A stretch of DNA of 29,457 bases from Camelus dromedarius (Eukaryota): the NCBI RefSeq assembly GCF_036321535.1. It is one part of the record NC_087438.1 of this genome. One strand, given 5' to 3'. This document shows positions 3,793 through 29,457 of the stretch, piece after piece. Below the pieces are notes generated by a model, which was not told the origin of the DNA, did no database searches, and worked only from the letters and a program-made list of their open reading frames with translations. Numbering within the stretch: the first letter of the stretch is position 1; every line of letters starts with the position of its first letter. The position numbers were made by a program, and so were the translations under genes.

Positions 3793-4455
<663 letters not shown>

Positions 4456-10049: not shown

Positions 10050-10724
<675 letters not shown>

Positions 10725-13512: not shown

Positions 13513-13626
<114 letters not shown>

Positions 13627-14760: not shown

Positions 14761-15015
<255 letters not shown>

Positions 15016-15520: not shown

Positions 15521-15877
<357 letters not shown>

Positions 15878-17157: not shown

Positions 17158-17523
<366 letters not shown>

Positions 17524-18262: not shown

Positions 18263-18616
<354 letters not shown>

Positions 18617-19493: not shown

Positions 19494-19607
<114 letters not shown>

Positions 19608-20644: not shown

Positions 20645-20939
<295 letters not shown>

Positions 20940-22842: not shown

Positions 22843-23240
<398 letters not shown>

Positions 23241-24155: not shown

Positions 24156-24201
24156 CTCCCACCTCACTGGCGCATCACTCCCACCTCACTGGCGCATCAC
24201 T
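24156..24201. repeat. Perfect 22-bp tandem duplication
   Basis: ctcccacctcactggcgcatca twice, plus ct. Confidence 0.95.
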
Positions 24202-25395: not shown

Positions 25396-25872
<477 letters not shown>

Positions 25873-26231: not shown

Positions 26232-26369
<138 letters not shown>

Positions 26370-27255: not shown

Positions 27256-27848
27256 CTCCACCACCACCACCTACCCCTATCCTGTGACCTCTTCAGAAAT
27301 CCCTGTCTCCCTCTCGTGCCAAACGTGAGTTCTATGTTCCTGCTGTCCTCGTGCCCAAGAATTTCCTAGTGGTTCCCAGTCTGGAACTGAATTCTGATGC
27401 CAGTAGTTCTCCCCCAACCCCATGATATAGCATCAGATCTTCTCTCCCAAAAATACCCGTGAAGCTCCAGCGTGACTTCAAATTCTGAAGGTAGTCTTGG
27501 TCTGTCATTTCTGAAATTTATTAAAAAAATTTTTTTCAGTGATGGACACGCTTAAGTGCAACTGCAGATACAGCATTTCTTGATAGAGACTGAATGTATT
27601 AAAAAGCAAAAGAGCCCCCACTAAACTTTCCCACCCTACGTTAAAAACAAAAACAAACATGAAAAAAGCCACTGTTTACCTCTGAGTTGGAGACTGCTAA
27701 GAGGACTCCCAGAATAAGGAAGGCTGGGAAGTGTTCATGTTATGGATTTGCTGCAGGAACTGAACCTGCCTATAGCTGGGGAAAGAGGAGGCAGGTGTGA
27801 TTAGTGGGGCCCAGAGGCAAAACTTGGGCCAAAAGTCTGGTCTCCTAG

Positions 27849-28124
<276 letters not shown>

Positions 28125-28199
28125 TGACACCCAGCACCCGGCGGCCTTGGCATTTCCTGGACGGTGTCCTTGAGAGGAGAAAATATGGGCTAGGGTATG

Positions 28200-28500
28200 T
28201 GGGTCAGAGTCAAATGAGTGTATTTCCTTCTACAAAGGCTGAATGCTATGGGCCTTTGAGGATGAATCAGACCTGTTCTTTGCCTTCAAGGAGCTCCTAG
28301 TCTAGGAGGGAGATGAGTCCCACGGTCACGTAAGCAGAATATGAGTCAGGCAGTGCTTTGTGTGGTATGAGAGGTTTTCACAAGTGCTGTGGGGGGTGGT
28401 CTCTGGAGTTGGGCCTGGAAGGAAAGACCTATGGCACTGAAGGGTACGGCATTCTGGGAGAGAGTGGCACCTACAAAGGATATAGGGTAAGGGCACGCGC
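28200..28500 (-). mobile_element. L2 fragment
   Basis: gatgaatcagacctgttctttgccttcaaggagctcctagtctag...caagtgctgtggg. Confidence 0.55.
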
Positions 28501-28544
28501 TGTGACTCTGCTTATGTTTCCCTTTTAATCCGTGACCCCTTTCT

Positions 28545-28870
28545 CATTTATAGTTGATTTACAATCGTGTTAGTCTCAGGTGTACACAGCACAGTGATTC
28601 AGTTATATATATATATCTGTAAATGTTTCTGTATTTTCCAATATAGGTTATTATAAGATACTGAATATTGTTCCCTGTGTTATACAGTCCATTCTTGTTG
28701 CTTATCTACTTTGTACATAGAAGTACGTAGCTGTTAATCCCATGTTTGTAATTTATTCTTTCACCCACCCCTTTGGTTACTGTAAATTTGTTTTCTGTGT
28801 CTGTTTGTATTTTGTAAATGCGCAGTTGATGGGGAGTATGTTTTAGATTCCGTGCACATGCGAGTGAGCG
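28545..28870 (-). mobile_element. L1 3'UTR fragment, resembling cetartiodactyl-type L1; contains short (TA)n
   Basis: tagttgatttacaatcgtgttagtctcaggtgtacacagcacagtgattcagttatata...taggttattataagatactgaatattgttccctgtgttatacagt...ttttagattcc. Confidence 0.75.
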
Positions 28871-29457
28871 AGTGACCGGGTGCGTCAGCGAGTGACCGGT
28901 CGGGTGGGTGGGTTGCTTGGTGGGGAGGACTGTACTGGACTCCTCTTTTGTTTTCCTCGCTCAGCGTGCACACGCGAGTCAGCGAGTGACCGGTCGGGTG
29001 GGTGGGTTGCTTGGTGGGGAGGACTGTACTGGACTCCTCTTTTGTTTTCCTCGCTCAGCGTGCACACGCGAGTCAGCGAGTGACCGGTCGGGTGGGTGGG
29101 TTGCTTGGTGGGGAGGACTGTACTGGACTCCTCTTTTGTTTTCCTCGCTCAGCGTGCACACGCGAGTCAGCGAGTGACCGGTCGGGTGGGTGGGTTGCTT
29201 GGTGGGGAGGACTGTACTGGACTCCTCTTTTGTTTTCCTCGCTCAGCGTGCACACGCGAGTCAGCGAGTGACCGGTCGGGTGGGTGGGTTGCTTGGTGGG
29301 GAGGACTGTACTGGACTCCTCTTTTGTTTTCCTCGCTCAGCGTGCACACGCGAGTCAGCGAGTGACCGGTCGGGTGGGTGGGTTGCTTGGTGGGGAGGAC
29401 TGTACTGGACTCCTCTTTTGTTTTCCTCGCTCAGCGTGCACACGCGAGTCAGCGAGT
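28851..29457. repeat. 94-bp CpG-rich tandem repeat (minisatellite/VNTR), truncated by window end
   Basis: Five identical full units (starts 28965, 29059, 29153, 29247, 29341), a partial unit from 29435 and a variant 114-nt first unit (28851-28964). Confidence 0.99.

Follow-up and report, generated by a model that had tools for sequence, protein, structure and literature searches.

The window, the whole stretch of 29,457 nucleotides of Camelus dromedarius record NC_087438.1 that was analyzed here, carries NDST1 on its + strand, and the last intron of this gene (intron 14) is host to a tandem array of 94-bp units. The first coding exon matches the Pfam heparan sulfate N-deacetylase N-terminal domain (E 3.7e-43). 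Near the other end of the mapped exons, positions 27945-28046 encode 34 residues that are all identical (34/34) to residues 810-843 of the 882-residue NDST1 chain 8cd0_A (PDB). Coding exons 2-14 were mapped singly from open frames and AG/GT borders, and their lengths were then summed. The terminal exon of NDST1 is outside the window.

3904-4416, + strand: NDST1 exon 2 (open frame and AG/GT borders)
10131-10625, + strand: NDST1 exon 3 (open frame and AG/GT borders)
13513-13600, + strand: NDST1 exon 4 (open frame and AG/GT borders)
14783-14937, + strand: NDST1 exon 5 (open frame and AG/GT borders)
15608-15793, + strand: NDST1 exon 6 (open frame and AG/GT borders)
17383-17511, + strand: NDST1 exon 7 (open frame and AG/GT borders)
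18317-18499, + strand: NDST1 exon 8 (open frame and borders; donor CAG|gtgggt)
19494-19590, + strand: NDST1 exon 9 (open frame and borders)
20815-20938, + strand: NDST1 exon 10 (open frame and AG/GT borders)
22881-23055, + strand: NDST1 exon 11 (open frame and AG/GT borders)
25420-25590, + strand: NDST1 exon 12 (open frame and borders; 171 nt, codons 716-772)
26259-26368, + strand: NDST1 exon 13 (open frame and AG/GT borders)
27944-28046, + strand: NDST1 exon 14 (103 nt; last residue D843, phase 0 at its end; donor GAT|gtaagt)

Together exons 2-14 comprise 2529 nt, or 843 codons, which makes D843 the last residue of exon 14 and leaves phase 0. The arithmetic of the initial annotation, by which exon 14 leaves phase 0 and inclusion of a 33-nt segment would add 11 residues after D843, is correct. 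The span of exon 12 agrees with the published numbering (PMC9132247).

The array begins about 840 nt into intron 14. It is a single tandem array at 28884-29457 with a period of 94, 6.1 copies, 100% matches and no indels (TRF score 1148); the figure of 6.1 copies is the count inside the window, the end of which cuts the array and leaves the sixth unit incomplete. A 25-nt piece of the unit has six exact occurrences against none expected from shuffled sequences, and the repeat is far beyond chance. Its copies lie head to tail and its period falls within the range of about 10-100 bp that defines minisatellite units. The anatomy of the array, like its gene context, is established directly. The features of the array and its 5' edge are as follows.

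28884-29457, + strand: 94-bp minisatellite (TRF; six exact matches against none expected)
28851-28879, + strand: diverged partial unit of 29 nt with two mismatches, at the 5' edge of the array (local alignment to the unit)
28902-28925, + (sense) strand: G-quadruplex-type motif, one per unit (regular-expression scan, six in the array)
28940-28964, + strand: acceptor-like pyrimidine tract and CAG, first of six with period 94 (21/23 pyrimidines)
28965-28997, + strand: open pseudo-microexon of 33 nt, first of five complete ones with period 94 (phase-0 translation RAHASQRVTGR)
28998-29003, + strand: donor-like GTGGGT after CGG, with period 94 (rough position weight matrix score)

The initial annotation had interpreted each of these units as a splice cassette, and its description of the unit is reproduced in full. 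The 94-nt units are identical, with AGs that end at 28964, 29058, 29152, 29246, 29340 and 29434; 21 of the 23 nucleotides before the AG are pyrimidines; and CGG|GTGGGT follows 33 nt after the AG, the intervening 33-mer reading RAHASQRVTGR with no stop in phase 0. GTGGGT is indeed the intronic hexamer of the exon 8 donor, and use of the acceptor without the donor would give 70 residues from 28965 and then a stop, as had been proposed. Each unit thus has what a cassette exon shows at first sight: an AG with its pyrimidine tract and a GT on either side of an open, frame-preserving segment. The donor-like GT is directly followed by G-triplets, and a second GTGGGT lies 4 nt beyond the donor-like one. 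An 8-bp palindrome, GACCGGTC, is located at 28986-28993 (+94n), immediately 5' of the donor-like GT in every unit.

GC- and G-rich composition with strand asymmetry is typical of minisatellites. The unit has a G+C content of 61%, with 35 G against 22 C, and contains 7 CpGs (CpG observed/expected 0.85), so that it shows the purine/pyrimidine strand asymmetry that is a typical, though not obligatory, trait of VNTRs. Four G-runs per unit, with loops of 1, 1 and 9 nt, form a predicted G-quadruplex motif; such four-run motifs number 6 in the 574 nt of the array and 16 in the other 28.9 kb of the window. The predicted RNA fold of the array is not unusual (z -0.70), and the array has no match in Rfam.

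The strength of the splice-like sites was compared with that of the real NDST1 sites. Scores were calculated with rough position weight matrices of the Shapiro-Senapathy type, not with MaxEntScan or SpliceAI, and therefore only ranks within NDST1 are trustworthy. The repeat acceptor scores 5.22, within the range of -0.1 to 8.9 (median near 3.9) found for 12 real NDST1 acceptors. The repeat donor scores 3.62, as compared with 0.8 to 8.6 for the real donors, and the alternative GTGGGT 4 nt on scores 2.0. Of the 2346 AGs outside the array, 28 reach the score of the repeat acceptor, and of the 1745 GTs there, 48 reach that of the repeat donor. When both thresholds are applied to AG...GT pairs with a separation of 20-250 nt, ten pairs remain, of which three are real exons and seven are unused, so that 28.8 kb of NDST1 contain seven unused pairs that score equal to or above the pair in the repeat. 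The cassette look is consequently not rare, with a chance of roughly 2% for any given 94-nt stretch. Little improbability comes from the in-frame length of the segment (1 in 3) or from its 11 codons without a stop (about 0.6).

The branch point is the sharpest difference between the repeat acceptor and the real acceptors, as judged from motifs. The initial annotation had reported no yUnAy branch point in the unit, and the deficit goes further: neither yTnAy nor even TnA occurs 15-60 nt 5' of the AG of the repeat, whereas a cassette exon would be expected to have yUnAy, or UnA as a minimum, some 18-45 nt ahead of its AG. All 12 real NDST1 acceptors have at least one TnA 15-60 nt upstream (7/12 have yTnAy), as do 26 of the 28 equally high-scoring AGs outside the array. 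The adenines that do occur in branch range before the repeat AG stand only in the contexts GGAC, GTAC and GGAG. Both this absence and the frequency of unused pairs of equal quality are, like the anatomy, direct observations. The 61-nt spacer between cassettes also contains an extra AG at position 23. The array has no polyA signal (AATAAA or ATTAAA), and the form with the 70-residue tail would therefore need read-through to the normal 3' end. On the whole these sequence features lean against real exon use of the units.

The region between exon 14 and the array consists of two parts.

28047-28548, + strand: unique 5' part of intron 14 (blastn; contigs L001 and L003, from two other mammals, align to about 28526-28549 with 69-85% identity)
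28549-28859, + strand: fragment of an old, dispersed L1-like repeat (similarity to its other copies peters out near 28859)

Sixteen host-derived metagenome contigs, retrieved by a 17-mer of the L1-like fragment, align from 28549 with 69-90% identity. The alignment of one L1-like copy, L107, passes the TTTAGATT motif and stops near 28859, where it just enters the array, and the overlap of the array with L1-like homology is limited to these first few bases. The L001 contig (75-85% identical to the window) breaks exactly at the start of the L1-like element (L001 3900-3934). The L003 contig (69-77% identical; possibly from a primate) reaches the terminal exon and is without the L1-like element (L003 1600-1660); its alignment to the window ends at 28526, and its terminal acceptor follows about 255 nt further on. 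L003, the one contig from another mammal that spans to the terminal exon, contains no unit-like sequence. The L1-like fragment upstream of the array is thus shared with the L001 species and absent at the same site in the L003 species, and for this reason it appears to be a lineage-restricted old insertion.

Derivation of the unit itself from the L1-like element was considered and rejected. Alignments of the unit to the continuation of L107 give z values of -0.7 and +0.6 when compared with shuffled sequences, and other registers align better than the natural one. The unit of a transposon-derived minisatellite is alignable to its parent element, and this one is not detectably so.

Searches for products of the array gave the following results. 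The 93-codon open frame of the array has no resembling protein (51-163 residues) among 5.8 billion proteins, and the array was rejected as coding sequence on this ground. The cassette peptide is present in none of 78 products that contain exon 14, which for this species is a weak test, as is the protein word search. The products that contain exon 14 continue with intron read-through and one of them with the terminal exon; the read-through products are from other species. An exact 41-mer of the unit was not found in metagenome contigs, and no record was found of an antisense ATG reading frame over exon 14. One protein from a Logan contig of another species, P0007, runs from intron 13 read-through into exon 14 and then directly into the peptide of the terminal exon. 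This arrangement fits a partly processed transcript, from which intron 14 was removed before intron 13, or a retrocopy.

Words sampled from positions 27800-29457 were looked for in sequencing runs. Fourteen DNA-like runs from at least six further studies contain 0.94-0.97 of the sampled words. Four RNA libraries (X15-X18, reproductive system metagenome) contain 0.51-0.79 of them. Because these libraries are word-rich for a stretch that is 94% intron, they carry unspliced or genomic material, and their word content says nothing on splicing.

These observations are probably best explained by an ordinary GC- and G-rich intronic minisatellite that was recently expanded or homogenized and whose splice-like motifs are incidental. 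The array may have arisen at the truncated edge of the old L1-like fragment, from one 94-nt unit in which, by chance, a run of pyrimidines closed with AG and a GT with G-runs stood 33 nt further on. Copying of that unit would have multiplied the cassette look. The units would most likely be removed with the rest of intron 14, giving at most trace cryptic splicing, and we infer that they are not used in RNA. General mutation rates are the basis for reading perfect, CpG-bearing copies as a sign of recent expansion or homogenization. The array appears young because its six copies are identical despite 7 CpGs in each, and the decayed partial copy that stands beside them at the 5' edge also counts for the minisatellite reading. 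The kind of element is already known, as intronic minisatellites have precedents such as the VNTR in ABCA7 intron 18.

It is unlikely that the units serve as 33-nt cassettes, or their acceptors as decoys that compete with the terminal exon, so that NDST1 output or its C-terminus would depend on copy number. This possibility draws on the 21/23 pyrimidine tract with an acceptor score above the median of the real sites, on CGG|GTGGGT with its downstream G-runs and an intronic half equal to that of a real donor, and on a 33-nt segment that is in frame and stop-free. To these may be added the precedents of ABCA7, of splicing-linked tandem repeats and of ultra-short introns that are rich in G, and the chance that the array sits near the true acceptor, as the distance of about 255 nt in L003 would allow. 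Against it are the absence of a TnA branch motif, the AG within the spacer, the commonness of comparable unused AG...GT pairs in NDST1, the lack of a polyA signal for the tail isoform and the absence of the cassette peptide from every product found. Exons of 33 nt, moreover, usually require dedicated enhancers. A more elaborate form of the proposal is highly improbable: that in this lineage the array is polymorphic and modifies the splicing of the NDST1 terminal exon according to its copy number, either by excision of the G-rich 61-nt spacers as ultra-short introns or by acceptors that trap the exon 14 donor. The NDST1 so formed would have 11 inserted residues or a foreign tail of 70 residues after D843; it could be inactive and dominant-negative in the manner of the isoform NDST1B and could lower the N-sulfation of heparan sulfate.

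An error of assembly would account for the array differently, since both the identity of the copies and their number could stem from collapse, over-extension or a contig break in the repeat, and the true allele would then differ from the array given here. Identity of 100% across six copies is unusual and the window stops within the array, but the array has a natural-looking 5' edge with its decayed partial copy, and a word content of 0.94-0.97 in fourteen DNA-like runs would be hard to reach without the words of the unit. The word content is indirect evidence that the DNA is real and not chimeric, and an artefact is improbable. An action of the array by DNA or RNA structure or by chromatin instead of by splice sites, with effects on elongation, R-loops, methylation or binding of hnRNP H/F in the last intron, is very unlikely. 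The four-run G motif that each unit carries (6 in the 574 nt of the array as compared with 16 in 28.9 kb) and CpG-island-like composition over more than 500 nt are in its favor, as is the example of CEB1 and CEB25, G-rich minisatellites that are reported to act through G-quadruplexes (PMC3486850). The case is, on the other hand, based on motifs, one loop is 9 nt long, no conservation is seen in L003 and the fold is unremarkable.

Comparison with known systems places the array among repeats that can influence splicing, with differences in each case. The ABCA7 intron 18 VNTR is also an intronic tandem array with a splice-site motif in every unit; one of its units is retained through a cryptic donor in about 2%, and exon skipping rises with array length (De Roeck 2018, PMC5954066). 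The ABCA7 unit is 25 bp long, the array adjoins the exon, and its first GT is the real donor, whereas the NDST1 unit is 94 bp and the array is about 840 nt into the intron. The ABCA7 unit provides a donor; the NDST1 unit has both an acceptor-like and a donor-like site. Good matches to AG and GT mostly remain unspliced, but the length of a repeat can switch pseudoexons on or off through altered enhancers or through the distance to the branch site (PMC10078293). The cases validated there (RYR3 and NARS2) involve repeats of short motifs that lie within or next to one pseudoexon, while in NDST1 the whole pseudoexon is the repeated unit.

The spacing of the cassettes, as given in the initial annotation, is 61 nt (94-33). 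The conclusion drawn from it, that neighboring cassettes would tend to exclude each other, is unsafe: true splicing is on record for human introns of 37-65 nt, of which most are G-rich and many have no recognizable branch or splice sites, and G-triplets just downstream of the donor are known splicing enhancers (PMC4463651). The 61-nt spacer resembles these introns in being G-rich, in having G-triplets right after the GT and in having no branch-site consensus. As such ultra-short introns splice (PMC4463651), a spacing of 61 nt is no firm bar to splicing, and nor is the lack of a branch motif. The introns of that study are conserved and lie between real exons, in contrast to the spacer, a candidate intron within an apparently lineage-restricted repeat.

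CEB1 and CEB25 resemble the array in their units of tens of bases, their G strand asymmetry and their G-quadruplex motif in each unit; they are reported to be subtelomeric human loci with demonstrated instability, whereas the G-quadruplex motifs of the NDST1 array are predicted (PMC3486850). NDST1B is an isoform of NDST1 in which exon 12 is skipped, and it is inactive and dominant-negative (PMC9132247). The likeness is that a change in the sulfotransferase half can inactivate the enzyme, as a cassette or tail after D843 might. The difference is that NDST1B is a documented isoform that concerns another exon and involves no repeat (PMC9132247).

The pattern of N-sulfation in heparan sulfate is set by NDST1. 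A variant of the enzyme with an inactive sulfotransferase half behaves as a dominant negative (PMC9132247). If a hypervariable repeat in the last intron changed how much NDST1 is made or how its C-terminus reads, heparan sulfate structure would be under a natural control that depends on repeat length, and the repeat would be a clean non-human counterpart of the ABCA7 VNTR. The locus is mainly a caution, as any copied unit with a pyrimidine run, an AG and a GT resembles a row of exons.

Other introns of NDST1 have features of their own. Intron 11 contains a perfect 22-bp tandem duplication at 24156-24201 (2.1 copies, with an overlapping 11-bp sub-period; TRF). The donor of exon 9 is apparently GC instead of GT (CAG|gcaggt, 19588-19596). 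The neighboring AG|gtctct would break the frame if used as the donor, and because only CAG|gcaggt keeps the frame into exon 10 (G|GC ACC ACG...), the intron after exon 9 is likely a GC-AG intron.
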